Of a stretch of DNA of 64,000 nucleotides, positions 5,061 to 52,372 are shown in pieces. The number at the start of each line of letters is the position of its first letter. Position 1 is the first letter of the stretch. The notes under the pieces were generated by a model. It was not told the DNA's origin and ran no database searches. It worked only from the letters and a program-made list of their open reading frames with translations. A program made the position numbers and the translations under genes. Location of the stretch: NCBI GenBank assembly GCA_038087875.1, contig CM075978.1, positions 174,902,001 through 174,966,000 of the forward strand, read 5' to 3'. The stretch is from Malacoraja senta (Eukaryota).

Positions 5061-5115
5061 ATGTTTAAGTTTGCCGTGCTGCTGTGTCTTTCGATCCTCC
5101 ACATGAGTTACACAG
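5061..5115 (+). CDS. Gene A signal-peptide exon MFKFAVLLCLSILHMSYT
   Basis: ATG at 5061, hydrophobic core, phase-1 donor CAG|GTTAAT, 195-bp intron to the V exon; similar to the gene B leader (LHMSYT vs LHVSCA). Confidence 0.85.
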
Positions 5116-5310
5116 GTTAATATATTTCTCTCTATTAAATGCAAATGGTATCGAAAAAGTCACTCCGCGAAAATTATAAGATGTACAACTTTCAAACTTC
5201 TACCCTACTTTACTCTTACCTTTCGGTCGATCTATTTCAGCCATTTGGATTTTTATCTATCAGTTCTTTGTCATTTCACAAGTTTAACGTTTGTTTTTTA
5301 ATTCTGACAG

Positions 5311-5634
5311 TAACTGACCGGCCCTTCTCGTTCAGTGTGCGTCAGATTCCCGATAAGGTAACGAAGATGAAAGGTGAAAATGTATCCTTATACTGTGCTT
5401 GGCAAAACGTCGGTCAGAAAGCATTGCTGGGTGTATATTGGAAGAAAGAGGGTCAAGAAGAGGCTTTGGCTCACACCCCAAACAGGAGGATGACAATGAA
5501 CAATGTCCTGAAGCGATTTGCTGAATTACATCTGTTCGACGTGGGCTTCCGTGACTCCGGGATCTATTATTGCAGTGTGAGAGACGGGAAAGGAAACAGT
5601 TCCAAAGGCAATGGCACGAGGATTATTGTACACG
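5311..5634 (+). CDS. Gene A V-set (VJ-type) Ig domain exon
   Basis: Acceptor ctgacag|; 324 nt open. VRQIP...VSLYC...GVYWKK...AELHLFDVGFRDSGIYYC...GNGTRIIVH carries the canonical Cys, Trp, DxGxYYC and a J-like GxGT in one exon. Confidence 0.95.
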
Positions 5635-8600
5635 GGTCTTACTTGATGTTTCGTATCCCAATAGAAACACAGAAATATGGTGTGCAACAGAGTTATAAAG
5701 TAGCAATAAACGAACCTTTGCTCAGTCTGAACTAGAGGTTTTGCTCCAATTAAGTGTTTGGTTTTTCGTGATTGTTGGACCATGAGATCTTTGGACATTC
5801 ATTATTCTTTAATTTCATATCATTTACTTATCATTTTTATGTCTGGAGATAATTTTCTAGGCGGGACCTCAACTGCATCCAGCGAAAGGAGTATAGATTA
5901 AGATTGCAGATGGTAGTCAATGAAATGGAAACCATCATATGTTGGCGAGTATTGTAGCTGCAGTCGTTTAGTCAAAAAAACATTGCATTCAGGTCGAGAC
6001 CTGTGATATCCAGATGATTGAACGTTCTTGGCAGATCACGAATTGAGCTATTTTGCAGAATATCCATGTTTGACCATTTATATAGCTATTTCTAGTCCAA
6101 CTAGTAAATGTTAACAAAACGTGTGTTGTTAGAAGAAACATTTGGTGAATAGTGAGCGTGATATATTCTAACCGCAATCTTGTGTAAGACTATTCCACCG
6201 TGATTTTAGGAATTCATAGTTTCAAAGAAAATCAATGATAAAATACGAGTCACAACATATCTGCGACTACAGAAATTAGTTTCTGCCGAGAACGTTATAG
6301 CGGAAGTACCAAAAGTTCATGATGAAAATTGTTCAAGAAATTCAGACGTATAGCAAGGAAGAATAGGTGGGGTGCGTGGTGGCGCATTAATGTGGGTGGA
6401 AGACAAAAAACATGACATGATAAACGGGGGAAAATCTGAGAATAATGCAACAAGTCACAAAATAAGTAAACAAAGGAGATAAATGTAGTACCATAAATCA
6501 AATGATTAAATTGCAAATTGAGAATATTAATCAAAACGTTATCCGTCAATTTACGTTGAGTTTCATTGGAACCCAGCAGAGCGTCGAGTGGGAGAACAGA
6601 AGCTTCAATACGAATGGCAATTACACGTCAGTGTCATACTCGATTTCTTGGTGGAAATATGCCAGAAAGCTTCACCCAACTGAGTACGGTCTTCCCACGC
6701 ACATTTCAATCCCACATGAACAACTACTGAATACACATAGTCACGCTACCATACCTTGTCCAGTTTAAGTGCCGTGACAAATACCTAAAGCACCCCATCA
6801 TTTTCGAAAGTTATAACTGCTCAAAAACCAATCAACAACTCCTAAACATAGAACATGAATAGGCCCTTCGGCCCACAATTCCAGTGCGCAATATGGTGCC
6901 AAACTAAATAAATCTCCGCTCTGTGTGAGACATATCCTTTCATTCCCTGTATGTACCTATTTAAAAATATCTACGATGCCCCTATCGCATCTGCCTCTGC
7001 AACTACGCATGATGTAGTTAAGCTGGAACGGGTATAGAGCAGATTTACGAGGATGTTGCCACCACGCGAGGGTCTGAGCTATAGGGAGAGCCGAAGCAGG
7101 CCAGGGCTTTATTCTATTGCAGCGCAGGAGCTATCTGATCATGACCGGAATAAATCGGTAATATGCAAAGCCTTTTACCCGGAGTAGTGGAATCAAGTCC
7201 TTGTAAACGAAACATTTCACCGCATTAAATTACAATAACCGAGGAAAAGAAGTTTGCGTTGCAATTGAGAGATCAATTATGTGCCCGCCACCAGGAAAGC
7301 GAAATTGTCAGTCCCATGTACCCTTTCTTTCTTGGAACGCTTAAATTGCTTTCCACCAGGTGTTTAATTAATTTATTTCTCACGGTTTGATTGGCTCTGC
7401 TTCCAGCACATTTCCGATCACTACTTGTGAAACATCCCCGGAAATTCTCTGGTGAGAGCACTTGCATAGATCAGTTTGGGATGGAGATCAAAGATTTACC
7501 CACCGATGTGGAGATAATGCTTTTGTTACGTGGACGGGAGCAAAATGATGACGCTCCTTTGCCTTTATAGATGGTGTCCTATTTGGTGTTAAGTAATGGC
7601 TGTTGCTAAACATTTCATTCTATTAAATCACACACCACCCCTCCCCGATCAGCCCCTTTTTAATCAAATGCATACATATTTTATCCCTCTAAATCCTTTC
7701 CAGTGGCCTTCCTACCACAGACTGGTTTACAGTTCCCAGGCATATTTTACATATAATACAAAAATAACTAAATTTACGATTTAATTAACGCAATTTTCCG
7801 TTTGATTGGACCACCTTGAACTCTGCTTTGTCTGGTGTAGCAACGTTGCAACGTTGTAGGTAACCTAAATCGTCCTATCACCAACTAGAGAGAAGTCTAG
7901 TCCTACCATCTACCATACAGGAGATTATCAAACTATCTTTTTATCGGACTTTACTGGACCTTATCTTGAACTAAACGCACTCCGGTAATATTGAATCTGT
8001 ACAATGTGGACGGCTTGATCGTAATCATGTGTAGTATTTTCGCTGATTGAATAACACACAACAAAAAACATTTCACCGTGGCTCGGTACACGTGAGAATA
8101 AACTGAAACTGTGTAGCACAAAAAAAATAGAATCGCCCATGACAAGGAAATCTCGGAGGCAAGGTAGCTTTATCAAAGAGAGATGACCGAATACTCTGTG
8201 CTCTATTTCACAGAGACTTGGCTCACCCATCCTCCCCAGACTCACCCAGACTCCCCAGCCGTCCATGCGGATAGTTTCTCCATTCGTCGCATGGACTGAA
8301 TAAAAAGCGTTGGGGAAAGTGATAGGTGGTCACACCTGCCTCACATAGCGCTCAGATATAGTGGTTCTGTCCAACTGCGTTATAACAAGTGTTTACTGTA
8401 TTATATATTTCCAACAACGTAGCTGACATACTGTCTGTCTGAAGAAGGGGTTCGGCCCGTAACGTTGCCTATTTCCTTCGCTCCATAGATGCTGCTGCAC
8501 CCGCTGAGTTTCTCCAGCATTTTTGTGTACCTAGCTGAAATACTTTACTATTTAAGGAACGCCCAAGAAGGTATGGTATTATCCATTTCGAAAGCGATTC

Positions 8601-8659
8601 TGTTGTCTTCTAAATAAACATATAAGGGTACTAACTCCTTTGTCTTAAATTGTTTACAG

Positions 8660-8939
8660 TGTCACCGACGCCTTTGAAGATTAAACAGATGGACACCTTC
8701 CCTGGCCCTAAACTGTACAACTGCTCCGTTTTTCCCGGAGGACTGTGAACTTACCTGGTATAAAGATGACCATGAAATCACTTCTGGAATAAGTACCACT
8801 AAAATACGGAACGATGAGGGCTTATACCTTGCTTCCAGCTTCCTGCATGTAGTGGATAGCCGATCGGTTTATAGTTGCCACGTATCTCACGTCACCCTCC
8901 TGGTTCGGACCATTGAAACTCACAGATTTCCTGGAATCG
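8660..8939 (+). CDS. Gene A C1-set Ig domain exon with +1 frameshift
   Basis: Acceptor tttacag|, donor G|GTATGA, 280 nt (3n+1). The 5' frame reads VSPTPLKIKQMDTF; a second frame reads LALNCTTAPFFPEDCELTWYKD...GLYLASSFL...YSCHVSHVTL, showing the C1 motifs FxP, LxWxK and YxCxVxH. Confidence 0.9.
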
Positions 8940-10013
8940 GTATGAGGTTTATACCTTCAATAACGTCCCGAGATATATCACTGTTTTTTATGTCAAGGAA
9001 TTTCATGAATTCCCACCCAAAACTTACGCCAGACCGTTTTTAAGTATTTGAATGGAGATTGTGGGCATGCCTTTGTTGAAATGGAAAGGTATGCCAGTCT
9101 ATGAAATTAGATACTGGTTAGTAAGAGATATCGCGCAAAGATGACAGTTGTATTTGCATGTATGTATAATAGCGGACGCTGGAACTCGCTGTTTATCTCC
9201 GATCATATAGATCTCTACAGAATGGAAGCAAGGCCCTTCGGCCCGCCCCGTCCACGTCAAGCAAATTGCCATTCTGGCCTAGACCCATCTCTCCGCATTT
9301 GACCATTTCCCCTCTAAATCTTTCCTATCCAAATATCTATCCAAATATCATTTGAAAATCCGCAAATGTATACGCTTCCGTAGCTTCCTCGGAGAGAAAT
9401 TGCCCCTTGGGACCCTCGTAACCTTCCATGTTAGGAATCCATTACCCTGGCAAAAACGACTGTAAGCATTCACTTTCTCTACGCCCTTTATAATTATATA
9501 TACTTGAATTAGGTAAACTTGCTATGCCTCATGGGAAGAGGTCACAACCTATGCAGCATCACCGGATAACTCCAGCCATGAATTCCAGACAATACCTTGG
9601 TGAATCCTTTCTGCACCTTTCCAAAATAATGACATGCTACGTATAGCAGGATGACCAGGACTGCACACAGAACACCAACGAGTCGTCTCAGCAAATACTT
9701 GTAAAGCATAATAAGGGCACTGGTTTCTGTTTATATGTAAATTAATCTTCAGTCTAATCGCTGTAACATTGGAGACTGGAGAGGGGTTGTAATCCAACAT
9801 ATTACAAGTTCCAAGGGACCAAAACAACAATACAGAGACCAAGGGAGATTTTATGGCATTAACACAGATGATTTATTTTTCATTAACTCAGATGATTTAT
9901 TTTCTCATCGTTGCTGATCTGTGATGAGATTCAAACAAAAGAGGAAAATGAAAAGAAAGGAGAAATAAGAACATGTTCGAACGGTCATACACACAATACG
10001 GATAAACGATAAT

Positions 10014-12141
10014 TCAGGCTGATGGGCGTTCCTCTGAACGGTCTGATCTGTTCTGTGCTCCCAGACATATCAAGACAGATTCTAAGATGAGTAGGAAGCA
10101 ACCGTGGCTGACAAGAGAAGTGAGGGATATAATAACATTAAAAGAAAAGATGTATAACACAGCAAAGAGTAGTCGGAAGCCAGAGGATTGGGAAACTTTC
10201 ATAGGACAACAGAAGGAAACAAAACAGGCAATACGGGCTGAAAAGATAAAGTACGAGGGGAAGCTGGCCAGGAATATAAAGAAGGACAGTAAAAGCTTCT
10301 TTAGATATGTTAATGGAAAAAGAGTAGCAAAATCAGATGTAGATCCCTTGAAGGCAGACACGGGCGAAATTATTATGGGGAACAAGGAAATGGCAGAGGG
10401 GTTGAACAGGTACTTTGGATCTGTCTTCAGTAAGGAAGACACAAACAATCTCCCGGAAATTCTGGAGGACAGGGGATCAAAGGGGGTAGAGGAACTGAAA
10501 GAAATTATCATTAGGTGAGAAATAGTATTGGGTAGGTTAATGGGACTGAAGGATAATAAATCCCCTGGGCCCGATGGTCTGCATCCAAGGATCCTCAGGG
10601 AAGTGGCTCTAGAAATAGTGGACGCACTGGTGATCATTTTCCAATGTTCAATAGATTCAGGATCAGTTCCTGTGGATTAGAGGATAGCTAATGTTATCCC
10701 AATTTTCAAGAACGGAGCGAGAGAGAAAACGTGGAATTACAGACCAGTAAGCCTGACTTCGGTGGTGGGAAAGATGCTGGAGTCAATCATTAAAGCGGTA
10801 ATAATGGGGCATTTGTATAGCAGTAGAAGGATCAGTCCAAGTCAGCATGGATTTATGAAAGGAAAATCATGCTGGAATTTTTTGAGCATGTGACAAGCAT
10901 AATGGATGAAGGGGAGCCAGTGGATGTAGTGTATCTAGACTTTCAGAACGCCTTTGATAAGGTCCCGCACGGGAGACTGGTGACTAAAATTGGAGCACAT
11001 GATATTGGGGGTAGGGTGTTGACGTGGATAGAACATTGGTTGGCAGACAGGAAGCAAAGTGTCGGAGTGAACGGGTCCTTTTCAGAATGGCAGGCAGTGG
11101 CGAGTGGAGTGCCGCAATGCTCGGTGTTGGGGCCGCAACTGTTTACAATATATTAATGATTTGGAAGAGGGAATTAGGAGCAACACTAGCAGGTTTGCAG
11201 ATGACACAAAGCTGTGTGGCAGTGTGAACTGTGAAGAGGATGTTAGGACGTTGCAGGCTGACCTGGACAGGTTGGGTGTGTGGGCAGATGCGTGACAGAT
11301 GCAGTATAATATAGATAAATGTGAGGTTACCCACTTTGTGGCAAAAACAAGGGGACAGATCATTATCTCAATGGGGTTAGGTTAGGTAAGGGGGAGGTAG
11401 AGCGAGACCTGGGTGTCCTTGTACACTGGTCACTGAAAGTTGGCGTGCAGGTACAGCAGGCAGTGAAGAAAACGAATGGAATATTGTCCTTCATAACAAG
11501 AGGATTTCAATAGAGGTGTAGAGAGGTTCTTCTGCAGTTGTATAGGGCTCTGGTAAGACCACATCTGGAGTATTCTGTACAGTTTTGGTCTCCTAATTTG
11601 AGGAAGGACATCCTTGTGATTGAGGCAGTGCAGCGTAGGTTCACGAGATTGATCGCTGGGATGGCGGGACTGTCATATGAGGAAAGATTGAAAAGACTAG
11701 GCTTCTATTCCCTGGAGTTTAGAAGGATGAGGGGGATCTTATAAAAACATATAAAATTATTTAAAAAAAGACTGGACAAGCTAGATGCAGGCAAATAGTT
11801 CCCAATGTTGGACGAGTCCAGAACCAGGGGCCACAGTCTTAGAATAAAGGGGAGGCCATTTAAGATTGAGGAGAGAAAAAAACGTTTTCACCCAGAGAGT
11901 TGTGAATTTGTGGAATTCCCTGCCACAGAGAGCAGTGGAGGCCAAATCACTGGATGGATTTAAGAGAGAGTTAGATAGAGCTCTAGGGGCTGGTGGAATC
12001 AAGGGGTATGGGGAGAAGGCAGGCACGGGTTATTGATTGGGGACGATCAGCCATGATGACAATGAATGGCGGTGCTGGCTCGAAGGGCCGAATGGCCTCC
12101 TCCTGCACTTATTTTCTATGATTCTATGTTTCTATGTTTCT
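10014..12141 (+). mobile_element. CR1-clade (HER1-like) LINE, about 2.1 kb 3' portion, frameshifted
   Basis: QPWLT...[32 protein letters not shown], followed by the 3' UTR and (TCTATGTT)n tail at about 12113-12141. Confidence 0.93.
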
Positions 12142-15100
12142 AATGTATTGTTAATTTTATGCGCCCAGCATCTGGAATTTATCCCATTATCTTCATTCAT
12201 TGAACTGCCAGTTTTCATCCAATTTTCTGAAATTAGTGAATTCGTTGTTCAGGTCTAAAGTTTTAGTGCATGCATTTGGAAGATATTTCTTAACGTTTTT
12301 GTGTGACTTTGTTGAGCTAGGACGAGATTCGAAAGAAAGTAAATTGAAAATCTAAGATGGATTAGGATTTGAGGTGACTGGGAACTGGAAATTGAATTAA
12401 CATCTTCATATTGACAGTTTTAGTTTTGGAGATATCGCGTGCAAACGGAGCCTTCAGCCCACCGAGTCGACGGTGATCATCGATCACCGGTATATAGTTC
12501 TCTGTTAGAACACTTTTTCTTTCACTTCCTACACTGGCGGCAATTTACAGAAGCCAATTAGCCTACAAACCTTCACATCCAATGGATGTGCGAGGAGACC
12601 ATATCACTCGAAGAATACCAACGGGGTCACATTGAGATCGTACAAATTCCGCACAGACAACATCCCTGGTTAGGTTCAAACCCGTGTCTCTCGCGTTGTG
12701 AGGCAGCAGCTCTACCGCTGCACCACTGTGCTGCCGCAGCTCTCGTTTGCATTTTGTATTTCCCTAGTAAAATAGACCTCACCCAATATAGTAATTGAAA
12801 TCGGAAATCGCCAAATCTGGCGGGAGTGCGCAGGTCCCCGGATGGTGTAAATGGAAGTTTTGAAAGGGCAAACATTATATTATCTATCGCTGAATGCGAA
12901 GGTATGGTGAGAAGGCAACTAGGTGCACAGGAGAGTGAAGGTGGTTTGTGATGAAATAATGCCTTTGCGATAAAAAGAAAGTAGAGGGAGAACAGTTGTC
13001 AGCTGGTGCCATAACCCCGATGGTCGCTTAAAATACATAGCATGATTCCGTGAGAATAGAGGGTAGTAGGATGGAAGATTACAAGAATAATCCCAGGAAT
13101 GAGTAGGTTAACCTATGATGAGCGTTTGATCGCTGGAGTTGAGAAGAATGAAGGGGGGACTCATTGAAGCATACAGAATAGTGAAAGGGTCGTGAGTGCA
13201 CGTGGGGAGGATGTTTCCACCAGCGGGAGAGTATAGGACTAGAGGTCATAGGCTCAGAAATAAATTAAAAAAAAGTCCGTGGAGGCCGTCAGTGGATATT
13301 TTTTAGGCAGAGATAGATAGATTCTTGGTTGGTACAGGTGTCAGCCGCTATGAGGAGAAGGCAGTAGTATGGGGTTAGAAGGGAGAGATAGATCAGCCAC
13401 GATTGAATGGCGGGTAATTATGATAGGTCGAATGGCCTAATTCTAATCCTATCCTGTAGTCTCAAGTTAGAATTGAACCTGTATATCTGGTGTTGTGAAA
13501 CAGTAGCTCTACTAGATGTGTCGCTGTTGAGCCCAAGTTGGTGATTGCCCTTCTCAATGAACACAAGGCCTGTTAAATCATCCTACTGAATGTTTGTCTG
13601 CCTCGGACTTGCTAAATGGCACTCATTGTTTTATTGGTCTGAGAGTTTCAGGTTAACAATTGAAATAATGGGATTTTTTTCGAACTCATTACTAATGCTT
13701 GCAACACTTAAAATTACTTAAGATTACTTACAGAATATCGGTGAATCTGTGGGATTATTTGCTACAGAAGGCTGTGGAGGCCGCCAGTGGCTATTTTAAA
13801 GGCAGAGATAAATAGATTTTCGATTAATACAGGTGACAGAGGTTAAGGAGAATAGGAAGGAGAATGGGGTTCGGAGGGAGAGATAGTTCAGCCATGGTTG
13901 AATGGCGGAGTAGACTTGATGGACCGAATGGCTTAATTCTACTATTACTTATGACCGAATGACCTTATGGACAAGAAGAAAGCTCTTCTTGTTCAAGGTG
14001 GGTGTCGGAACAAGATTTCAGAGCAGCAGACTGATAAATTGAGCATGCATGGTTGAGGACCAAACTAGGATGGAGGCAAATATTTTGAGGTAAAGGGTGC
14101 TGATAGAAACAGCAATACAGAATGTGCGATTATCAGAAAATGTCAAACAATGTCTCAGAAAACACATATAGATAATGGAGGCCGTTCACCTGGCTGAGTC
14201 GGAGGAAATGGGCTGGAGATAACTGTGGGGGTACGCGGGATTTTTATAGGGATTAATAGCACCCCCCCTACCCCCCACCACCCCCCCCCCCGATGAGTGT
14301 GGAAAATTTGAGTTTGCAAAATGGAAAGCTAATGTAGAGAGAGCATTGTAAAGATTGGTCGAAACGTATTTGCCCAATCTTGCACTGGACGTACTTCCTA
14401 TCCAAACGCAATGGCACAATCTCCTTGCTTTTACGTTAGTTCTTTCTTGATAAATAATAAGGATGCAATTAACTATGTGCCTGCCTTAACTTTAGTTACC
14501 ATTATGAAATACTCTCGATAGGTACCCCCCATTGTATATTTTGTTATTTTGTTTTTATAAATGCAATCGTTTATTCTTGGTAGTCTCTTCATCGTTTGGG
14601 GGTTCATAAGGTACAAACGTTGAATATCAAATTTCCACTTCCCCGCTATTATGAATAATAAGCTCAATCGCAGCTACGGAGACTGTATACTTTTCTCCAG
14701 ACCCAAAACCAACGGTTCGAGTGTTTTATGTGGTTAAATGAAGAAAACAGGTCCTTGGGTTCTGCTAGTCCCTAATTGTACGAAATCTACAGTCGTCCCA
14801 ATTCATTCCCTACACAGTCCCATCAACTCCCCACAAAATGATTTTCACATTAATGACGAATATAGACTCAAAATACTGGAGTAGCTGAACGGGACAGGCA
14901 GCATCATTGGAGAGAAGGAATGGGTGACGTTTCGGGTCGAGACCCTTCTTCAAACTTAATGACTATGTATAATGGCCAATTAACCAACAATCTTGCAAGT
15001 GGTTGAGATTTGGGAAGATGTTAGAGTACCCTAAGAAAGTCACGTGATCACCGTGGGGATATAAAAACTCCAGAGAACACTGGAGGCTAGAATTGATCCA

Positions 15101-15929
15101 GGGTCTCTGCAGATGTGAAACAGCAGATTTACTAACTGCGAAGATGTGCCAGGAGTGGATCCAGAGTGTCACTTTCTCGGGATGGTATAACGTGACTAAC
15201 GTCTATATTGTTCAAACCATTTTGAAAGCTGGGATAGTGCACGTGTAACATTTCGATGGTGAATCAATGATTGGTTCGCCAAACCCTCTCAGAGATATAT
15301 CACAACTCAGAATACTTCTGATCTCGTGTTGATAAATGAATCCTATCGACTGCAGTTATCTTTCCAAAATAAGTCTGTCTATAGTTCAATTAAATAGGCT
15401 TTACGACATCAAAGGTCCCAACACGAAGAAGACAGACCCGAAACGTAGAATCATTTATTTTTCCGAATACAAAGTACATTACAGATCGTGCGCGAGAAAT
15501 CGTGTTTATTATGCCCAGTGGAATTCATTTTTGGTGTTTTCACTCCAGGTATTTCGTTTCCTTAAAGTTTATATTTTGATTGCCGGAAAGTTGGAGGATT
15601 CCCCCCTGTCACCAGTGACACGGCGGAACGAGGAGATGGGGTGACAAGCGCATCCGTGCAATGTCAAAATAGTATGTAGACATCAAATATGAAGGAGAAA
15701 CAAAGGAAAATGTTTGAGATTCGCAACTATCAGACAGTATATATGAAGAGTAAAACAAAGCTCAGTCCTTTTTAAATGCTACTGATCGATTTTTTTTTTA
15801 AATTTAGAATTAAGGATGAAGTTTCAGGTACTTGGCACATGATAAAATATGCAGACGTCAGCATGATTTTGTTAAGGGGGGATCTTGCCTGACCAATCTT
15901 TGGGGGGGGGGGGGGGGTTGGGGAGATAA

Positions 15930-16360
15930 CAAGCGGGATGGACGAGAGAGAGAGTCAATGAGCGTCGTTTACTTTGAATTTCAGTAGGCCTTTGATAAGG
16001 TGCCCTATGTGAGGCAGCTAAACAAAATAGAAGCACATGGCATTAGGGGCAAGTAATTAGCACGGATTGAAGATTGGCTGGCTGGCAGAAGGCAAACCAT
16101 GGCAATAAAGGGGGCTTTTGTGGTTAGCTACGTTTTAATAGTGGTATTCTGCAGGGGTCGGTGTTGAGTCTGCTACATTTTACATTATATGTTAATTGTC
16201 TGGATGATGAAATTGATGGCTTTGTCGGCAGGTTTTCCGATGAAATGAAGATAGGTGCAGAAAGTGTTGAAGAAGCAGGGAGTCTGCAGAAGGACTTGGA
16301 CAGCGGGAGCGTGGGTGTAAACAAGTGGCAGATGGAATACTGTGTAGCAAAGTCATGCAT
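15930..16360 (+). mobile_element. Degraded CR1 RT fragment
   Basis: Recognisable AFDKVP, GSVL and FSDE-like remnants with stops. Confidence 0.7.
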
Positions 16361-16479
16361 TTGAGAGAAGAGAGAAAATGTAGAATCCGTCGTGTAATTC
16401 CCTGCTTCGTGTAATCTGATTATAAAATGAAGTTAACCTCTCTGAAAAATTCTAATATTCAGCTTTCATTTCCCTTTAG

Positions 16480-16590
16480 GAACAAGCGTTAAACTCATCT
16501 GCTTTCGGGCGGGTGAATTTGCCATATGTGTTTTAATTATTCTAGCGCTGGTATTTTTTGTCAGGCGGTACGAATTAGGCAGTACTGAAG
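16480..16590 (+). CDS. Gene A transmembrane exon GTSVKLICFRAGEFAICVLIILALVFFVRRYELGSTE
   Basis: Acceptor tccctttag|, donor AAG|GTAAGA, 111 nt phase 1-1. Hydrophobic stretch followed by an RR stop-transfer; the RAG motif is shared with the gene B TM. Confidence 0.85.
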
Positions 16591-17519
16591 GTAAGATGCG
16601 ACTTTACCCTTGTCTGAAATTAGCGACATAAGGAACTGCAGATGCTGGAATAATTCGGCTATTTATGTAGTATCTGGAGAGGCAATGGATAGGGGGGTTT
16701 GCGTTTGAGTCACATGTAAGGAAGGGTCCCGACCCGAAACTTCATCTATCGATGATCCCCGTAGACGATGCCTAACCCGCTGAATGACTACAACACTTCG
16801 TGTTTTCTCCGAAAATAGCATTTCAATTGAAGGAGCAACGAGATGAGCTCATGTAACAAATAAAACAACAGGGCCTTTTTCTCCGGCCGTAGCATTATGT
16901 GGATAACAACATTTTAACCCGTTTAAGCCGTTGGCTGTAAAAACATTGTTATCGTTTGTAAAACAAGATGGCGCTGTAAACACTATGTGAAATGCTGCAG
17001 ATGTCGGGTTGTTTAAATAAGTTCAGTTATCACAGGAAAGCGTACTCAAACCAGAGGTTTTGAACTTTCCGCGTGCTTTTCCTCAGCAGTAGGACTAACG
17101 AGGAGAGGATTTGTTCAAATAACAAAACTAGCATGACCGCAATGATCATATTCTGCAGCCGAACGAATCTGGTCACAACTAGATTCTCAACTGATTATCG
17201 GCCGGCAGGTTGTGACATGTTGATAATTCAATTTGGTCGTTTATGTTCTCTGCTAGCCCCAGAAAATATTGAGGACATAACCCACTACTTTGAAAACACG
17301 TGATTTTCTTGATGGTATTACAAGATATAACCTGTCGTATTATGTTCTGCAAATGGACGCCCGTAATTATAATCACATTAATGGGCGAACAGGATGGTTC
17401 CATTTTACGTGGAACTCTCTATGTGCCTCGTTTGCAATTTTCATTATCCACCCGTATTCTTATGATATAGTCCATGATCGTCAGTGACGTGCGTTTGCTT
17501 ATCTTTCTCCCAAACAGTT

Positions 17520-18045
17520 ACATAGAAACATATAAAATAGGTGCAGTAGTAGGCCATTTGACCCTTCGAGCCAGCACCGTATTTTAATATGATCATGGCT
17601 CATCATCCAGAATCAGTACCCTGTACCTGCTTTCTCCCCATATCGCTAGATCCTAGAGCTAAATCCAACTCTCTCTTGAATACATCCAGTGAATTGGCCC
17701 CCACTGCTTTCTGTGGCAGATAATTCCACAGATTCACAACTCTCTGGGTGAAAACGTTTTTCCTCATCTCAGTCCTAAATGGCCTACCACTTATTCTTAA
17801 ACTATGACCCTTGGTTCTGGACTTCCCCAACACGGGGAACATTTTCCTGCATCTAGCCTGTCCAATCCCTTAATAGTTTTATATGTTTTTATGATATCCT
17901 CTCATCCTTCTAAATTCCAGTGAATACAAGCCCAGTCGATCCATTCTTTCATCATATGTCAGTCACGCCATCCCGGAAATTAAACTGGTGAACCTCCGCT
18001 GCACTCTCACAATAGCAAGAATGTCCTTCCTCAAACTAGGACACC
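17520..18045 (-). mobile_element. CR1 3' fragment
   Basis: CATAGAAACATA tail and the MFPVLGKSRTKGHSLRI peptide. Confidence 0.85.
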
Positions 18046-18625
18046 TAATACCTGCATGCTTACTTTCAGTCTATGTCTAAGAAAGAACTGTGGATGCTGG
18101 AAAAATCGAAGGTAGTCAAAAATGCTAGATAAACTCAGCGGGTGAGGCAGCATCTATGAAGAGAAGCAATAGGCGACGTTTCGGGACGAGACCCTTCTTC
18201 AGACTGATCATACTGAAGAAGGGCCTCGACCCGAAACGCCGCCTATTCTCTACCTTCAGTTCATGTCTAATCCGTCTGTGTCAAGCGAAGCATCCGTAAA
18301 GCATCATCACCGAAGCCCAGCCTGTTCCAATTCTGAGCCCAGAAATCGCGCCACCTGGATATTTTCCCAGAAGTTATCATCCAACAAACTTTCGGTCAGT
18401 GTTCTGCACCATGCGTTTCACGATTTGGCTAATAGTCACTAATTATTCAGGAAAACCAATTAGATACGAGTTGCTTCAATTACTTTTTAGGAATCTTATC
18501 ACAGGGAAGTAGCCATATATAGCGTATATCATACCCAACTTTCACCCCATTGTTTTATGTTTGCTCGTCTTCGCAGTTGTTTGTAAATGCTGAGTTTATT
18601 TCCCTTCAAATAAATGTTCCCTCAG

Positions 18626-18712
18626 AATCCAACGTACGCAGATTTGAACTTCAGCGGACAGAAGAAAACTGAGAAAAACAGACGGGACGAAAAACAAACT
18701 GCCTGTGCCCAG
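18626..18712 (+). CDS. Gene A cytoplasmic exon with ITIM-like PTYADL
   Basis: Acceptor ccctcag|, donor CAG|GTAAGA, 87 nt phase 0: NPTYADLNFSGQKKTEKNRRDEKQTACAQ. Confidence 0.8.
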
Positions 18713-18809
18713 GTAAGATAAAAGCGGGAGGGTGCTCCAAGGAACATTCGCGTACGTCGCCCATATAGGCGAATCGGCAGCTCATGATCTCTGATTATTT
18801 TTTCGATAG

Positions 18810-18974
18810 GTCAAAGAAGTGTCTGAAAATAAACTGACTTACGCAACTCTGGATCTCATCGCTTCTCCGAAAGATCCAAGAACGGAGAAGAATAATGTAA
18901 CAGAATATGCAGGAATGAAGATTTTAAAATGGCTGCGAAATCATCAAACGTTCATTAAAGGTCATCCAATTTAA
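18810..18974 (+). CDS. Gene A terminal exon with ITIM LTYATL and ITSM-like TEYAGM
   Basis: Acceptor ttttttcgatag|, phase 0: VKEVSENKLTYATLDLIASPKDPRTEKNNVTEYAGMKILKWLRNHQTFIKGHPI-stop (TAA 18972-18974); 97-bp intron upstream. Confidence 0.85.
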   Translation, partial: VKEVSENKLTYATLDLIASPKDPRTEKNNVTEYAGMKILKWLRNHQTFIKGHPI

Positions 18975-22738: not shown

Positions 22739-22883
22739 NNNNNNNNNNNNNNNNNNNNNNNNNNNNNNNNNNNNNNNNNNNNNNNNNNNNNNNNNNNNNN
22801 NNNNNNNNNNNNNNNNNNNNNNNNNNNNNNNNNNNNNNNNNNNNNNNNNNNNNNNNNNNNNNNNNNNNNNNNNNNNNNNNNNN
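22739..22883. other. Assembly gap (145 N)
   Basis: Run of N. Confidence 1.
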
Positions 22884-23169
22884 GCATTTAACTTTCGATT
22901 TCATAAATGCACTCCTCTCTAGATTTGGTCAATTATTTCCCCAGATTTTGAATAAAATTGTTCACAAACTGCTGGCATGAGTCAATGCCACCTCACAGAT
23001 GTCCAATCACAATGGACCTCATTTACGTATATGACATCACAATGGGACAGGTGTGGGAGATTGGAACCTTCACGTGGTCCCACTAAAATCAAACTGCTGC
23101 ATGAGTCAGTGCTATGTCACAGATGTCTAATAACATGCATCTCATTTACATATGCCATCACAATGGGAC

Positions 23170-25790: not shown

Positions 25791-27881
25791 TCGCAAGTTC
25801 TCTGGTAGGTCGCCTGAATTGGGTAAAATGATCATTGTCAATGCCTCAACAGTTCCCTCTTTTGCTTCTCAAAACTAAGCTGGGATGGATCCCCCGTCAT
25901 TATATAAATAACCTCTAAAATATCCATATATCTCATAGATCTCGCTTTCCTCAATTGCATCAATTCGGTGACTACTGATGCGAAGTGCACGCTTGATACC
26001 CCAGGCAACTTTTCTAGCTCCAGGTGTAATTGTCTTCCTTTGTCCTTGAGTGGCCATAACTCAATCCCTGGTTGCCTTCTTGTTTTTACTATATGTATAT
26101 AATGCCTTGGGATTTTCTATAATCCTACTCGCTAAGGATATTTGATACCAGATTATCCAAGACCACTTTGTCTGCCTTACAGCGCCAGAGACCAGGAATC
26201 GATCCTGATTACGGGTGCTGTTTGTACGGAGTTTGCACGTTTTCCCTGTGACGCCCTGGGTTATCTCCGGGTGCTCTGCTTTCCTCCCGCATTGCAAGGA
26301 CTTGCACGTTTGTAGATTAATTGGCTTCTGTAAAATAAATGTCCCCAGTGTGTAGGATACACGTGTAATCGTTGGTCTGCGCGGATTCAGTGGGACCAAG
26401 GGCCTGTTTCCACGCTGTATCTCTAAACTAAATTAAAACCTAATTTCCTGTTGAACCTCATCCCTGTTTTCTTTATATTCCTCAAAGACATTTAATCGAA
26501 CGGGTGCTACTCTGCCCTTCCAGATTTGGATTGCTTATCGCGTATTCAGCTATTTAACTTTTCAATGGCTGTGTTGTCGTATTCCAGTGATTCCAGTGAT
26601 AATAAGTTCGTAAGTTCATAGGTTCTTGGAGCAGAATTAGGCCATTCGGACCATCAAGTCAACTTCGCCATTCAATCGTGGTCGATCTATCTTGCCCTCT
26701 CAACACCGTTCTCGTGCCTTCCCCACGTAACCCCTGACACCCTTACTAATAATCCGTCACTCACCGCTTTAAAACATCAATTGGCTTGACTTCCACAACA
26801 ATGAATTCCACAGATTCACCACCCCCTGACTGATGAAATGCCTCCTCATCTCATTTCTAAAGGTACCTCATTTTATTCTGAGGCTATGGTCTCTGGTCCT
26901 AGGCTCTATAAGTGGCAACAACCTCTCCATTTTACTCAAGCCTTTCACTATTTGGTAGGTTTCAATGGGATTCATAATGAAATATCACAGGATTAAAATG
27001 GGCTTACCTATGATCCTTTTGATCAAAATCGACCAAACGTTTACCAAAATGTAATACTTTAAACACTTAAAGCATAAAGGACATATGGGCCACTTTCTGA
27101 TTTTGAAGCTCCCTTTCAAAATGTCGGCACCTAACCCACCACGAGACCCGAAGTTTACGCCAGAGTCATTACAATCACGTTGTTTGAATTTAAAAAACCC
27201 GACGAATGCACCCCCCCCGTTATAGCGCAATATATAATATTCACGACGTTACTCAACGGGGGACGGGGGGACGGGGGGGGGAGACAACATACAGAATTAA
27301 ACATCGCTATATATATAAACGGCTACTCTGCTTTTAATTAACACATTTAACACGTGACCAAATTGACACTGCTACTCACGTCCTGTTGCAAAAACTTGGG
27401 GCATCAGAAAATCCTTATCGGGTGAAAAATGATTAAAAAATCATAAGCATAATCAGAATTTGACTTATTTAATTGCAAATTTAATGTAATCTTTCTGGTA
27501 TAAATTAGCCTTAGGGTTTGATGAAATCCTGCTTGAAAAATGTCACCAAAAAATGGCAAGAACACAGGGACATATCAGATATTTTTCTTTGTAAAAACAG
27601 GTTTATTTATTTTTGCTTCATCTCATTATTTTGGTTATACTCCATGATTTATACTACTTAAAATACAGGGCATGAAACAATGGGAAAATTACATTAATAA
27701 AATCAAGGACATAATCTGGAAGTTTGGAACATAATCTGGAGGTTTCACTACTGAGTGCTGTATTTACGGTAACGCCTATATCAGTTCCTCTCTATTCCGC
27801 TAGTAGCGAGGAAGTCTACAATATAGCCCACATAGTCTACAAAGACATCCACAGAGCAGTAATAAAATATGGCTGGAAAAC

Positions 27882-30800
27882 TGTAGATGAGATATGCATG
27901 TGCCTTTAACATAGTGACCTCACACCCACTAACCACTCCCCATATCACAAGTATAACTACAACCTCCACACCCACAGATCGCTCTCTAGTTCCTGTGACA
28001 GACCACGTACAGCTAGTGCAATGTATAATGATCCAGTATGAATAAAGATAGTAAAGTAACGATGCCTGGTTATCAATCCTTTACATGGTGTCAAATAACT
28101 TACCTTGCGCCTCCCGTTTATCGGTTTATCATTTAATTTTGACCCAGTTTTTTGTTTCCCCCCCTAACTGTTTTGTTATGGCCTCTTCTGCCCGTAAGCC
28201 CGATGCGCTCGTTTTCGATTTCGACATCGCCCTTCGATGGGACATATTCAAACGCGACTTTGAACACTATTTCACGATTGCCCATCCTGGCGCCACCCCC
28301 GCTCTCAAAGCCTCACTGCTTCTCAACTTGGCTGGTCCCAACGCCTTGACTCGCTCTGACTTCTTCGTCTACGCTCCTGGAGAATCAGCTCGGGACCCGG
28401 CATGTCTGTTGGCTAAGTTTGACGCTATTTGTGACATTCCGACTAATTGCATTTTAGAACGTTTTAAACTGTTCGCGCGGCGTCAGCTCCCTGGGGAATC
28501 TGCTGAGAACTATGTCATTGCGCTGCGGGACCTGGGCAGGCACTGCCGCCTCGAGACGTGGACACCCGACAATGTCATCAGGGACCTACTGGTTTACGGT
28601 CTCCGTGATGAGAAGCTCAGGTCCGAACTACTTCGCAAGCCGGATCTGACCTTGGCCGATGCAATGCACGCTACTCGCTTAGCCGACGCTGTTTCCGCGG
28701 CGGCGCCGCCGGCTGAACAGGCGATCAACTTTGCCAGCACTCCTAGCTATCTCATGAACGCACCCCAGTCGCGACCCCCGGTGTCGCTCGCTGCTCGAGG
28801 GGGACGCGCCCCGGGGTTCGGTGGTGCCACAAGGGGAGGCACCCAGCAAAGGTGCCCTAATTGCAACTTCACAACTCATCAGTTCAATGTGTGCCCTGCG
28901 CTGGGAAAGAACTGCAATTCCTGTAATAAGTTGAACCATTTTGCTGCAGCTTGTCGTTCCCGTGGGAAGCCTGTCGCTGCTCGAAGGCAAAATTTAAACA
29001 ACCTTCTACAGTCGGATAATGATCTCAGCTCCCAGCACTATTCCGATGAACATTCTGTTCCTACATCTAACTCCTCTCAGGGGGAAACCAGCTTGTTTAC
29101 CGTGGTGGACGCACCTGCTATGATAACGGATCCTTCTGTGCAAGTCACTGTGAACAACTCGACCTTCACGGCCAAAATCGACACTGTGGCGGTTACCAAT
29201 GTTATGTCAACATCTCTTTTCAACCAGATAAGGACTAATGAGAAGATATTTTCTCAGAGCTCAAACCTGCATGCCTACGGTGGGGAGATCCTTACTCCTG
29301 TGGGCAAGGCCACACTACACTGTAAGATACTGAAGGCCACTCGGCCCCTCACCTTCTTTCTCCTCAATCGACGTTGCATTCCCCTGCTGGGGATCCAGGC
29401 ATGCCAGGAAATGGGACTGGTGTCCTTCCACCGGGACATCCACCACGTGCAGGCTCTTATGGACCCGCTGGCCGAGTATCCCGACCGCTTTGATGATAAG
29501 CTAGGCAAACTACCCTGCAGCTACAAGATTGAAGTGGACCATAAGATCATTCCTGTGGTCCATGCTCCTCACCGTATTTCCTTCGCCATGAGGGACAAAG
29601 TGGAGGCGACCCTACACAGTATGGTACAAATGGGCGTCCTAAAGGCGGTCGTCGAGCCCACCAGCTGGGTCTCTTCCATGGTTGTTGCTGCTAAAAAGGA
29701 CATGAGTGAGATACGCATCTGCATCAACCCCAGAGACCTCAACCTGGCCATTCGGCGCCCTCACTACCCTATGAGAACGGTGGAAGACGTCGCTGCACGG
29801 GTTGGTCCAGCAACGGTCTTTTCGGTCCTCGATGCCAAGAGTTCATTCTGGCAGATACCACTGGACGAGCGGTCGTCCATTTTGACAACCTTCGCCACCC
29901 CCTACGGAAGGTTTCGGTTCCTCCGAATGCCCTTCGGAATCAACTCTGCCAGTGAGGTATTCCAGCGAATCATGGAACAGTTGTTTTCAGATCTGCCTTG
30001 CGCCATAATTGTTGACGACATCCTCGTTTACGGTAAGGATGTTGCCGAACACGATGTCAACCTCCGCCTGATCCTGGACCGGGCCAGGCAAATCAACTTG
30101 AAACTGAACCCCAAGAAGTGCCGATTCCGCGTCTCGGAGGTCACCTATGTTGGACACGTATTCACCGCTGAGGGGCTAAAGCCAGACCCGCAGAAAACGA
30201 CTGCCATCTCAGGGATGCCTCCTCCTACTAACGTGGCAGGCCTGCAACGCTTCCTCGGCTTGGTAAACTACCTGGGGAAGTTCATCCCCGACCTAAGCGA
30301 GCTCAGCGCTCCCCTGAGGGATCTGATCAAAAAGGACACTTCCTGGCTTTGGTTACCCAATCATCAGAAGGCATTTGACATTCCCAAGTCTAAACTGATC
30401 AGCACACCCACGCTCAAGTTCTTTGACCTGCGGCATCCCATTGTCCTCACCTGCGACGCCTCTCAATTCGGACTTGGTGCAGCCTGCCTCCAGGTCCATG
30501 ACGGCCTGCAGCTGCCTGTCTCATTCGCGTCCCGCACCATGACCGCCACCGAACAGCACTACGCGCAGATTGAGAAGGAGCTACTGGCCGTGGTGTTTGC
30601 CTGCTCCAAATTCCGGGACTACATCGTGGGCAACACTTTCACCGTTGAAACTGACCATCAACCACTTGTTACCATCCTCAACAAACCGATCCATGTGGCC
30701 TCATCACGTCTGCAGCGCATGCTGCTGCAGCTCCAGCGTTTCACGTTCACGGTGGTTTATCGTAAGGGGAAGGACATGTTCGTAGCCGACACGTTGTCTC

Positions 30801-32613
30801 GCGCCCCGCTGACGTCCACTGCTCGCCACCAATACGAAATGTCCGAGTTACTAGTAGTACGATTGAACTTCGTCCCCTCGCCACAGATGAAGTCCCTGGT
30901 TGAACACACTACCAACGACCCTGCCCTGCAACAGCTGTCTGCCGTCATCCGGCAGGGCTGGCCTAACCGTCGCTCGGCACTGCCGGCTGGAGCCGTGCCC
31001 TACTTCCTGATTCGAGATGAGCTCGTATTGCACGACGGCGTGGTGGTGAAGGGTCACAAAGTGGTCGTGCCCTCGGCGCTGCATGACCACTATTTTCAGG
31101 TCGCACACCGCGGTCACACTGGGGCCGAAGCCACTTTGTCTCTCGCCAAGGCACAGTTCTATTGGCCGGATATGGCAAAGTACATCCGGGAGAGGGTCTC
31201 ATCGTGTTCCACCTGCAACAGCCGCGCCCCCCATCAGCAGCGTCAGCCGCTTCTACAGCAGCCCGCGCCCGGACTGCCCTGGATGGCGCTCGCCACAGAC
31301 ATTTTCGAGTGGCGGGGCAAACATTTCCTGGTACTCGTCGACTCCTACTCCAGCTGGTTTGTGGTTGACCGGGTGCCTTCCGTGACCTCTTCGGCCGTCA
31401 TCGACAGGTTGGACCCTCACTTTAGCACTTTTGGCCCCCCGGCAAGCTTGCAGTCGGACAATGGCAGCCAGTTCACGAGCTCCGAGTTTAAAGCGTTCGC
31501 TTCCAGATGGAACTTTCGCCATTTCACAAGCAGCCCGGAGTACCCGCAAAGCAACGGTTTGGCCGAGCGCGCGGTCCGCAGTGCTAAGCACCTGTTGGAA
31601 CAGTGTGGTGGCATTAACTCCGACTTCCACCTGGCCCTCTTCAGCCTTCGGAACATTTCTCGCGACCCTGCCATGGGTTCACCTGCTCAGCGGCTCCTGT
31701 CTCGCGCTACCAGGCTCCCACTCCCGGTGGCCCAGCGATCCCTCATACCCTCGGTCCTTCCACCTGCGGCGGTTCAGAAACGAATTGCCTTCAGGCAAGA
31801 CGTCCAAAAGCGGTCCCATGACAGGTCCTGCCACCCGCTGCCGCCCCTCTTCCCCGGTCAAGTAGTCCGTATGCAGACCACTCCCGGTCACTCCAAGCTC
31901 GCTACTGTCGTCGGCTCTGCGGGGTCGCCCAGGTCCTATTTCGTCGACTACGCTGGGACCATTTACCGACGGTCCCGCCAGCACCTTCGGCTCGTCCACG
32001 AGCCGCGTCCTCCTGCCGCCGATCCCTTTGCTCCCCCGCTGCCTGTTTCGCGTCCGGCCGTTGCCCTGCCCGTGATTCCCTACATGCCTCGCGCTGCTCC
32101 TCCTTCGCCCCCTCCGCTCCAACACACTCCGACTAGCCCTCGCACGCCCCCCCGCGCTCTTCCCGGTCCCGGCCCCGCATCCCCTCCGGTTTCGGTGCCG
32201 CGATCTCTTCCGTTTCCTCCCGTTTCTCCCTTTCAGGTTCGTCTGTCCCCGCTGGTGCCTCTTCCTCCTCCAGGAAGGGTGGATGGCGAGACGCGAACCC
32301 GGGCGGGACGTCTGGTCAAACCGCCTGACCGCTATGGCGATGTTGCCTAGCTATCCTAGCGCATGAGCCGTGGTCGCCATGTCACCTTTGTATTTGCCTG
32401 TCGTTTCGGGGAGGAAGGATGTAGATGAGATATGCATGTGCCTTTAACATAGTGACCTGACACCCACTAACCACTCCCCATATCACAAGTATAACTACAA
32501 CCTCCACAGCTCTCTAGTTCCTGTGACAGACCACGTACAGCTAGTGCAATGTATAATGATCCAGTATGAATAAAGATAGTAAAGTAACGATGCCTGGTTA
32601 TCAATCCTTTACA
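27882..32613 (+). mobile_element. Full-length Gypsy (Mag-like) LTR retrotransposon, young
   Basis: LTRs 27882-28085 and 32420-32613 (TG...CA) differ by one substitution and a 10-bp indel. 5-bp TSD AAAAC, PBS-like TGGTGTCA, PPT GGGGAGGAAGGA, and a single gag-pol ORF. Confidence 0.97.
28178..32350 (+). CDS. Gypsy gag-pol polyprotein (Gag with Cys/His knuckles, protease, RT, RNase H, integrase)
   Basis: The supplied ORF 28085-32350 is open; the likely start is MASSARKP at 28178. Motifs: CxxCxxxxHxxxxC, KIDTVA, IVDDIL, CDAS/EKEL/TDH/ADTLSR, HRGH...CSTC, D-D-E (ATDIF, SDNG, LAER), and C-terminal TRAGRLVKPP. Confidence 0.95.
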   Translation: MASSARKPDALVFDFDIALRWDIFKRDFEHYFTIAHPGATPALKASLLLNLAGPNALTRSDFFVYAPGESARDPACLLAKFDAICDIPTNCILERFKLFARRQLPGESAENYVIALRDLGRHCRLETWTPDNVIRDLLVYGLRDEKLRSELLRKPDLTLADAMHATRLADAVSAAAPPAEQAINFASTPSYLMNAPQSRPPVSLAARGGRAPGFGGATRGGTQQRCPNCNFTTHQFNVCPALGKNCNSCNKLNHFAAACRSRGKPVAARRQNLNNLLQSDNDLSSQHYSDEHSVPTSNSSQGETSLFTVVDAPAMITDPSVQVTVNNSTFTAKIDTVAVTNVMSTSLFNQIRTNEKIFSQSSNLHAYGGEILTPVGKATLHCKILKATRPLTFFLLNRRCIPLLGIQACQEMGLVSFHRDIHHVQALMDPLAEYPDRFDDKLGKLPCSYKIEVDHKIIPVVHAPHRISFAMRDKVEATLHSMVQMGVLKAVVEPTSWVSSMVVAAKKDMSEIRICINPRDLNLAIRRPHYPMRTVEDVAARVGPATVFSVLDAKSSFWQIPLDERSSILTTFATPYGRFRFLRMPFGINSASEVFQRIMEQLFSDLPCAIIVDDILVYGKDVAEHDVNLRLILDRARQINLKLNPKKCRFRVSEVTYVGHVFTAEGLKPDPQKTTAISGMPPPTNVAGLQRFLGLVNYLGKFIPDLSELSAPLRDLIKKDTSWLWLPNHQKAFDIPKSKLISTPTLKFFDLRHPIVLTCDASQFGLGAACLQVHDGLQLPVSFASRTMTATEQHYAQIEKELLAVVFACSKFRDYIVGNTFTVETDHQPLVTILNKPIHVASSRLQRMLLQLQRFTFTVVYRKGKDMFVADTLSRAPLTSTARHQYEMSELLVVRLNFVPSPQMKSLVEHTTNDPALQQLSAVIRQGWPNRRSALPAGAVPYFLIRDELVLHDGVVVKGHKVVVPSALHDHYFQVAHRGHTGAEATLSLAKAQFYWPDMAKYIRERVSSCSTCNSRAPHQQRQPLLQQPAPGLPWMALATDIFEWRGKHFLVLVDSYSSWFVVDRVPSVTSSAVIDRLDPHFSTFGPPASLQSDNGSQFTSSEFKAFASRWNFRHFTSSPEYPQSNGLAERAVRSAKHLLEQCGGINSDFHLALFSLRNISRDPAMGSPAQRLLSRATRLPLPVAQRSLIPSVLPPAAVQKRIAFRQDVQKRSHDRSCHPLPPLFPGQVVRMQTTPGHSKLATVVGSAGSPRSYFVDYAGTIYRRSRQHLRLVHEPRPPAADPFAPPLPVSRPAVALPVIPYMPRAAPPSPPPLQHTPTSPRTPPRALPGPGPASPPVSVPRSLPFPPVSPFQVRLSPLVPLPPPGRVDGETRTRAGRLVKPPDRYGDVA

Positions 32614-41591: not shown

Positions 41592-41894
41592 CTCGACTGT
41601 AGAAAGTATAACTGATATTGGTTGGATTCGGAAGAGAAATATGAGACACCTGGCAGGTATAAACTGTCCCGCTCTCCACATGGCCTGTCTCGGTCAGGCA
41701 GCTCCAAGCTTCGTACAGTCCTGCTGTTGTCTGCGTTTTGTTTGGATCAATCTTCTGTATAATATCTGACCCATTTTTGTACCAAGTAATATTCAGATCA
41801 AGAGGAAAGAACGTTGCTGTTTTACAAATGAGAATTAGAGCAACTGATGTGTTCACTGGCAGCATGGTGGTCAAGCTCAGAGGAGTTGGGCGGT
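41592..41894 (-). CDS. Gene B C1-set exon (intact)
   Basis: Acceptor ttttccag|, donor GAG|GTAAGA, 303 nt: RPTPLSLTT...LICKTATFFPLDLNITWYKNG...YTCQVSHISL...SYTFYSR; five NxS/T sequons. Confidence 0.92.
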
Positions 41895-44003: not shown

Positions 44004-44280
44004 CTTAAACTACCAGCTTTGTACCATTCCCGTTTAAAACGTTGGTACGTGTCAAGCTGCAAAAATAGAGCCCAGCGTCCTTCACTGTCACGTCCTCCAG
44101 CCGTAAGACAGCGCTTCCCCCTCTCAGGAAATAAAACTGGATTCGTTTATCTGCACCAATGCACTTTGTACGGCCTGTTGTCTGAGAAGATTGGATAAAT
44201 GCAGTAAAGCACTGCCGAGTCACCCCGCATCAAAACAGCTTCTGGAACTTGTGTTACGGTCAACGGGCCATCGTCACCAG
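44004..44280 (-). pseudogene. Gene B V-set exon, frameshifted, with terminal TAA
   Basis: Frame 1 reads AGDDGPLTVTQVPEAVLMRGDSAVLYC...YKVHWCR-stop. Frame 2 reads GADKRIQF...SAVLRLEDVTVKDAGLYFC...GNGTKLVV-TAA-G|GTGAGT. Length 277 nt (3n+1). Confidence 0.9.
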
Positions 44281-44480
44281 CTGTCGGGAAACGAAAAATG
44301 AAACTATAAGGCTTAGGATTAAACTAATGACCAAATTAATTGAAAATTTTACGTAACGAGAACAAAAATAAAGATAAAGGGTCAGCAAACTTATAAGTTA
44401 ATAATTAAGTTAATTTATAATATTTAAGTTATAAATATTTATAACTAAATTTATAATAATTAAGTTAATTTAAAATATAC

Positions 44481-44532
44481 CTGCGCAGCTGACGTGAAGA
44501 ACAATCAATTGCAGTAAGACACGTGTCATCAT
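44481..44532 (-). CDS. Gene B signal-peptide exon MMTRVLLQLIVLHVSCA
   Basis: 52 nt, phase-1 donor CAG|GTATAT, 200-bp intron to the V exon (195 bp in gene A). Confidence 0.8.

Positions 44533-52333: not shown

Positions 52334-52372
<39 letters not shown>

Follow-up and report, generated by a model that had tools for sequence, protein, structure and literature searches.

Exon organization of genes A and B

We analysed a window of 64,000 nucleotides from the skate Malacoraja senta (GenBank assembly GCA_038087875.1, contig CM075978.1, positions 174,902,001 to 174,966,000 of the forward strand; positions below count from its first letter), which carries two genes, here called A and B, of a family of immunoglobulin (Ig) receptors of the VJ-C1 type, in which a variable (V) domain with a joining (J)-like motif is encoded in a single exon and followed by one constant domain of the C1 set. 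The window is transposon-rich vertebrate DNA with one run of N. A tblastn search of it with the two obvious Ig exons located three exons of the V type and two of the C1 type. No match came from a word-indexed search that used the V exon of gene A. Gene A (+ strand, 5061-18974) and gene B (- strand, 44532-34549) are arranged tail to tail, each with a split leader, a VJ exon, one C1-set exon and a transmembrane (TM) exon that contains an arginine codon. An earlier note on this DNA, made from the letters alone, had proposed two convergent genes sharing this exon plan, and the exons were found where it placed them, with leader-V introns of 195 bp in gene A and 200 bp in gene B. As the reference we used a 78-kb locus of Amblyraja radiata (L001; CM021382.1), reached via the closest protein, an A. 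radiata model with 91% identity in C1; the gene copies of this locus are called A1 and B1 in block 1 and A2 and B2 in block 2.

Gene A comprises the following exons:
5061-5115, + strand: leader exon, with ATG at 5061, a phase-1 donor (CAG/GT) and 83% identity to the A. radiata A1 leader
5311-5634, + strand: VJ exon in open frame, with YYC...GNGTRIIVH; Pfam V-set at 8e-9
8660-8939, + strand: C1-set exon, frameshifted; Pfam C1-set at 3e-12
16480-16590, + strand: TM exon, with the Arg codon CGG at 16506-16508 and a phase-1 donor (AAG/GTAAGA)
17257-17299, + strand: small cytoplasmic exon of 43 nt, located via homology to A1
18626-18712, + strand: tyrosine-motif exon 1 (PTYADL), out of frame with the upstream exons and probably a fossil
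18810-18974, + strand: tyrosine-motif exon 2 (LTYATL, TEYAGM), with a stop at 18972-18974, likewise a probable fossil

Gene B comprises the following exons:
44532-44481, - strand: leader exon, with ATG at 44532, a phase-1 donor and 100% identity to the A. radiata B1 leader
44280-44004, - strand: broken VJ exon, with YFC and GNGT J-like motifs and 95.6% DNA identity to the intact B2 exon
41894-41592, - strand: intact C1-set exon; Pfam C1-set at 4e-11
35375-35283, - strand: TM exon, with the Arg codon AGA at 35334-35332
34613-34549, - strand: terminal exon, a derived form of the 44-nt exon, encoding a short tyrosine-free tail

The germline-joined V with a J-like GNGT and the single C1-set domain that the earlier note had described are borne out by the YYC or YFC and GNGT motifs and by the Pfam matches (V-set in gene A, C1-set in both genes). 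The J is fused into the V exon, with no separate J segment in either gene, and no pair of heptamer and nonamer resembling a recombination signal sequence (RSS) was found near any V exon in the window, as the note had also held. Its arginine-bearing TM in both genes and its short, tyrosine-free tail of gene B were likewise recovered. In the inhibitory paralogues, the Arg codon of gene A (CGG) corresponds to CTG (Leu) in A1 and that of gene B (AGA) to GGA (Gly) in B1.

At the outer edge of the TM, a Gly-Cys (GC.G.GL) is conserved in many family members and may form an interchain disulfide. The Cys is kept in gene A (16497-16499); gene B has Tyr at this position, where B1 and B2 carry Cys. The stretch 16818-16852 ('QLKEQRDELM') was weighed as a further exon of gene A and discarded, having unsuitable phases and a conservation that does not exceed that of the surrounding intron.

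Lesions in genes A and B

In gene A, alignment to the intact A1 copy revealed that the V donor G/GTGAGT has become GGGT through a 3-nt deletion at 5635-5637, and that 2 nt are deleted from the C1 exon between 8695 and 8696, outside any homopolymer. A compensating phase-2 splice from the altered V donor (GG/GT) to an internal AG at 8687-8688 was considered and rejected, given that the donor is the product of the deletion, that this acceptor lacks a pyrimidine tract and that the strong ancestral acceptor at 8659 is intact. The small cytoplasmic exon measures 43 nt, as against 44 nt in A1, B1 and Callorhinchus. The missing nucleotide lies in an A-run and is also absent from A. radiata A2, which comes from an independent assembly; its loss brings TGA 17301-17303 into frame, so that the protein ends before the tyrosine motifs. 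In addition, the second tyrosine of tyrosine-motif exon 1 is replaced by Cys (TGT 18704-18706). The earlier note had assigned gene A a tail with an immunoreceptor tyrosine-based inhibitory motif (ITIM) and switch motif (ITSM). The motif exons do exist at 18626-18712 and 18810-18974, but out of frame with the upstream exons, and they appear to be untranslated fossils behind a premature stop. The 'hybrid' of TM Arg and SIRP-like tyrosine tail in gene A would thus not be a design, because its tyrosine exons are probably fossil.

In gene B, the V exon has lost 35 nt at approximately 44157-44154, with GTG microhomology at the flanks. The deletion removes the C' region and shifts the frame into TAA 44149-44147. 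A second stop, TAC>TAA at 44007-44005, replaces the Tyr at the end of the J motif, directly before the donor. The donor of the 44-nt exon has changed from GT to GC, so that the frame continues until it meets a stop. From C1 through TM to tail, the exons of gene B are undamaged and share 84-94% identity with the A. radiata copies; its C1 has 90% amino acid identity to that of B1. Not one of the window copies, including a third fragment (gene C, described below), has an intact open reading frame (ORF) across all exons.

These breaks could reflect assembly errors in genes that are intact in the animal; the 43-nt exon has indeed lost its nucleotide in an A-run, and the V frame of gene A is still open. 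We consider this very unlikely. The lesions include deletions of 35 nt, of 3 nt and of 2 nt outside a homopolymer as well as a substitution to TAA, the loss in the A-run recurs in an independent assembly of another copy, and a retrotransposon ORF of 4.3 kb in the same window contains no frame error. The lesions were read as real because they do not resemble homopolymer miscalls and because this long ORF is uninterrupted. Judged from the genomic sequence, genes A and B are most likely pseudogenes, and a functional receptor product of either is unlikely.

A second possibility is that gene B is expressed without its V domain, from leader to C1, TM and short tail, or gene A in truncated form, with a regulatory or decoy role. 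Skipping of the V exon would keep the frame in gene B, where leader and C1 are both phase 1 and the exons from C1 onwards are preserved as described above, and NCBI V-less models are predicted for relatives in A. radiata and Mobula. The A. radiata model, however, is a chimera across two blocks, and a young pseudogene would be expected to retain short exons intact. Such a product seems unlikely, and decay of both genes is the reading that we prefer.

Two tandem blocks in Amblyraja radiata

The window is colinear with L001 twice, at 77-93% DNA identity with block 1 (most segments 83-89%) and at 87-93% with block 2. Each block consists, like the window, of one B-type and one A-type gene placed tail to tail. 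Block 1 is of inhibitory design, and in both of its genes the V and C1 exons are intact. The TM of A1 is uncharged, with CTG (Leu), its 44-nt cytoplasmic exon ends in a good donor, and its tyrosine exons are in phase. B1 encodes Gly (GGA) at the crucial TM position and has the donor AAG/GTAAGA at its 44-nt exon, with ITIM-bearing exons farther downstream. In a Callorhinchus gene, too, phase-0 tyrosine exons come after a 44-nt exon that runs from phase 1 to phase 0, and this structure is therefore regarded as ancestral.

Block 2 is of activating design and differs in TM and tail. B2 has AGA (Arg) in the TM and a GC donor at the 44-nt exon, from which the frame reads through seven codons to a stop; no ITIM exons were found downstream of B2 or of the window's gene B. 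A2 has CGG (Arg) in the TM; its 44-nt exon is short of one A in the A-run, so that a TGA comes into frame, and has lost its donor. Farther downstream, the codon for the second tyrosine is mutated in A2 as well, to AAT, compared with TGT in the window's gene A, and these different substitutions fit exons that were already untranslated before the copies diverged. The window thus shares with block 2 all of its derived features, namely both Arg codons, the GC donor of gene B, the 1-nt loss of gene A and the loss of the second tyrosine.

B1 and B2 are 96% identical in the V and 87% in the C1 protein sequence, a pattern that appears to be the signature of paired receptors. The V domains of the A and B types share approximately 30% identity, and in a quick tree they form separate lineages, A grouping with shark sequences and B with Mobula. 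These comparisons suggest that the true pairs are A1/A2 and B1/B2, lying between the tandem blocks, and not A/B.

The earlier note had taken A and B themselves for a working pair, gene A as an inhibitory receptor and gene B as its activating partner. Every exon type is present in the right order, tyrosine motifs can be read in 18626-18974, and gene B combines a TM Arg with a short tail. But the tail exons of gene A are out of frame past the 43-nt exon, and gene A itself has a TM Arg; it also lacks a V donor and has a frameshifted C1, and the V of gene B carries the 35-nt deletion and stops. Moreover, V domains of such low identity would not offer a shared ligand-binding face as in paired receptors. 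We therefore regard a functional pair within the window as highly improbable: both genes look like pseudogenes, both of activating design and of distinct old lineages. In this respect the result for the locus is mainly corrective, the apparent working pair being in all likelihood a decayed copy of an activating block.

NCBI's XP_032892406.1 ('H-2 class I ... alpha chain-like', 145 aa) is a chimeric model spanning L001 10001-67858. Its C1 and TM exons come from B1 and its terminal exon from B2, 52 kb away, and an intact V exon is left out.

Proposed origin of the window genes

Together, these observations suggest that the window represents a single tandem-repeat unit within a skate VJ-C1 receptor cluster, in which genes A and B are activating-type derivatives that have since been inactivated, a reading to which we assign a probability of roughly 0.8. 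An inhibitory two-gene unit (A1, B1) would have been duplicated in tandem and the second block (A2, B2) converted to the activating type. Conversion may have involved two steps, namely the gain of the TM Arg by one base change per gene and the removal of the tyrosine tail when the 44-nt exon was damaged, by a 1-nt loss in A and by a GT>GC change of the donor in B. In the M. senta genome, later inactivation would then have come about in A by loss of the V donor and the frameshift in C1, and in B by the 35-nt V deletion and the nonsense codon.

Several points weigh against this reading. The call of gene decay was made on genomic sequence, an assembly error is possible for the single 1-nt lesion, and GC donors are sometimes able to splice. 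The frame of the gene A V exon is still open, so that the inactivation would be recent or maybe an allele-specific null. The V and C1 exons of A2 fall outside the sampled A. radiata locus, and the window may correspond to A. radiata block 2 as its orthologue or represent another paralogue.

What is added here is the identification of a decayed activating block, of the probable pairs between blocks and of the putative conversion steps at single-base resolution. With activating and inhibitory partners that can be traced base by base, the cluster would offer a clean natural case of activating receptors arising from inhibitory ones.

The receptor family across cartilaginous fish

The homology search that the earlier note had proposed, carried out with phmmer and the gene B C1 exon as the query, recovered dozens of proteins with the leader-VJ-C1-TM plan in a chimaera, sharks, rays and skates. 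The exhaustive search comprised 524 relatives; dozens of these have 220-420 aa, the plan leader-VJ-C1-TM-tail and 40-57% identity. Members were found in the chimaera Callorhinchus; in the sharks Heptranchias, Heterodontus, Scyliorhinus, Carcharodon, Chiloscyllium and Hemiscyllium; in the rays Mobula, Hypanus, Hemitrygon and Pristis; and in the skates Amblyraja and Leucoraja. Identity to the window is 40-57% for the shark and chimaera members and about 70-96% for the skate copies. With a family profile, the best match outside the cartilaginous fish reached 1.6e-19, compared with 1e-75 to 1e-148 for most matches within the family.

Members share a phase-1 split leader, a single VJ exon with GxGT and a C1 domain that starts near PTPL and contains YxCxVSH, and genes A and B conform to this. 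The exon order continues with a phase-1 TM exon, the 44-nt exon (phase 1 to 0) and phase-0 tyrosine exons, which the window copies follow with the lesions described.

A scripted table of the fetched sequences was used to survey TM segments and tails in 51 TM-bearing entries, isoforms included. An Arg is present in the TM of 13 of the 51, and 10 of these 13 have short tails (35 aa or fewer in nine of the ten) and no real ITIM, the exception being VRYVQL, which is matched in three isoforms of a single gene. The remaining TM-bearing entries mostly combine an uncharged TM with 1-4 ITIM/ITSM-type tyrosines. The survey therefore indicates that the dichotomy between activating and inhibitory types belongs to the family, and the expanded cartilaginous-fish family with members of both types that the earlier note had envisaged is upheld by the relatives recovered.

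Shark relatives have Gly or hydrophobic residues at the Arg positions and long tails, and on this basis we infer that the activating forms derive from the inhibitory ones. In the window genes, the TM Arg is derived within skates. The activating-type members of sharks (P0042, P0103, P0121, P0176, P0029) have a conserved TM of the type ..R[LF][IL]L.[FV]L.., unlike the R-A-G of skates, and given these distinct types, a repeated origin of activating forms within the family seems likely.

The earlier note had called the family invisible in the ORF track except as fragments; members are, however, already predicted in public gene sets. Their names are automatic and inconsistent, among them 'tyrosine-protein phosphatase non-receptor type substrate 1-like' (SIRP-alpha-like), 'SIRP beta-1-like', 'tapasin-related protein-like', 'Ig lambda-1 light chain-like', 'NCR3 ligand 1-like' and 'CD276 homolog'. 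A literature search, limited to one collection of papers, found no description of the family, the published shark NCR3 family not having been compared for overlap, and although its members are predicted in public gene sets, it seems to have no curated name.

Comparison with known receptor systems

An AlphaFold model of a shark member was confident over V and C1, and its best PDB matches were Ig light chains, aligned over both domains. Among reviewed proteins (Swiss-Prot), Foldseek placed four mammalian SIRP-alpha entries on top, followed by CD276, B7H6, SIRP-beta, butyrophilins, Ig lambda and TAPBPR, a spread that explains the automatic names of the members. The V domain of gene A aligned end to end with solved NKp30 at E ~3e-4, with VNAR and T-cell receptor (TCR) V domains at similar levels. 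A PDB profile search with the V domains of the family was dominated by multi-Ig proteins and gave no ranking of NKp30, SIRP and TCR.

The family resembles SIRP in its N-terminal V domain with a J-like motif followed by a C1-set domain, in its paired inhibitory and activating members and in the inhibitory tail, which in SIRP has four tyrosines with an xTYAxL / TxYAx pattern like that of the family; the SIRP domains d2 and d3 match the C1 exon at 1e-10, and many members are listed by NCBI as SIRP-alpha-like. It differs in that the V of SIRP is followed by two C1 domains, compared with one C1 exon per gene here, and identity is just 15-20%. The activating members have their TM Arg near the outer leaflet, unlike SIRP-beta, which has a Lys in the middle of the TM. 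With NKp30/NCR3 the family shares a non-rearranging V of the VJ type and a TM Arg in R-A-G context with a short tail, but NKp30 has no C domain, whereas genes A and B each have a C1-set exon. The ectodomain of V plus C1 is that of Ig light and TCR chains; in contrast to these, the family genes have neither RSS nor separate J and are germline-joined, membrane-anchored and equipped with their own signalling tails.

The elasmobranch UrIg and UrIg2 are also non-rearranging, with a split leader and a single VJ exon followed by C1-type domains, of which there are several to eleven (Flajnik et al. 2023, 2025; PMC12227049). The present family differs from them in its single C1 and its multigene cluster of paired receptors, and UrIg and UrIg2 lack the dichotomy of ITIM and Arg-TM. 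In the white shark the MHC lies on chromosome 19 (PMC10751288). One white-shark member of the family is on a record of 193 Mb, an argument on MHC linkage that is indirect, as it comes from the record size of a single member.

We thus propose that these are non-rearranging VJ-C1 receptors specific to cartilaginous fish and closest to SIRP. In intact relatives of the window genes, the protein either ends in a long tail, on which there are up to four tyrosines of the ITIM/ITSM type, or has a TM Arg and a short tail. The tyrosine tail of SIRP-alpha recruits SHP phosphatases, and the TM Arg of NKp30 pairs with FcR-gamma or CD3-zeta. By analogy with SIRP-alpha, KIR, Ly49 and NKp30, the tyrosine tails of the A1/B1 type would be expected to recruit SHP-1/2, and the short-tail Arg-TM proteins of the B2 type may signal via an acidic adaptor with an immunoreceptor tyrosine-based activation motif (ITAM), such as FcR-gamma or CD3-zeta.

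By its architecture, the family may be related to NKp30, to SIRP and to the precursor of antigen receptors: its V and TM are NKp30-like, its V+C1 resembles antigen receptors, and its tail is like that of SIRP-alpha. A fuller scenario, in which both duplicated genes went independently through the two-step conversion (Arg gain and lesion of the 44-nt exon) within an apparently undescribed family that, given this combination of features, stands near the common ancestor of NKp30 and SIRP and is relevant to a non-rearranging precursor of antigen receptors, is put forward as a doubtful one. Cartilaginous fish appear to possess a large cluster of germline-joined V+C1 receptors with rapid turnover.

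Gene C and other features of the window

A third family member, gene C, lies beyond the region that the earlier note had covered:
48338-48284, - strand: leader exon of gene C
48091-47787, - strand: VJ pseudo-exon of gene C, with a TAA stop, a frameshift and the first Cys lost

No C1 exon was found in the window downstream of the gene C V. Compared with a skate C-type V, identity is 82% over the second half and 59-61% over the first half. Intact skate relatives of this lineage include an A. radiata V-C1-C1 protein, the only skate C-type model with tandem C1 domains.

Between genes A and B lie the following features:
22739-22883: intergenic assembly gap, lying between the convergent genes on the side of their 3' ends
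27875-32613, + strand: young Ty3/Gypsy long terminal repeat (LTR) retrotransposon

The gap is 3.8 kb past the stop of gene A and 11.7 kb past that of gene B. It adjoins a fragment of a long interspersed nuclear element (LINE) and a simple repeat rich in CT, no exon is adjacent to it, and the order and orientation of both flanks match the paralogous skate locus; it is irrelevant to every reading frame. The long CT-rich repeat beside it, at 23100-23950, is probably its cause.

No host gene suitable for synteny flanks the cluster in the window, its last 16 kb included, the remainder consisting of transposon ORFs. The Ty3/Gypsy element has an intact gag-pol ORF of 1421 aa at 28085-32350 and LTRs of approximately 210 bp that are 96-100% identical. 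It has no counterpart in the homologous A. radiata copy, and its insertion is considered recent because it is missing from that homologous block. On the - strand, 50406-53597 and 55565-63637 contain another Gypsy-like element, which is degraded, together with several fragments of LINE reverse transcriptase.

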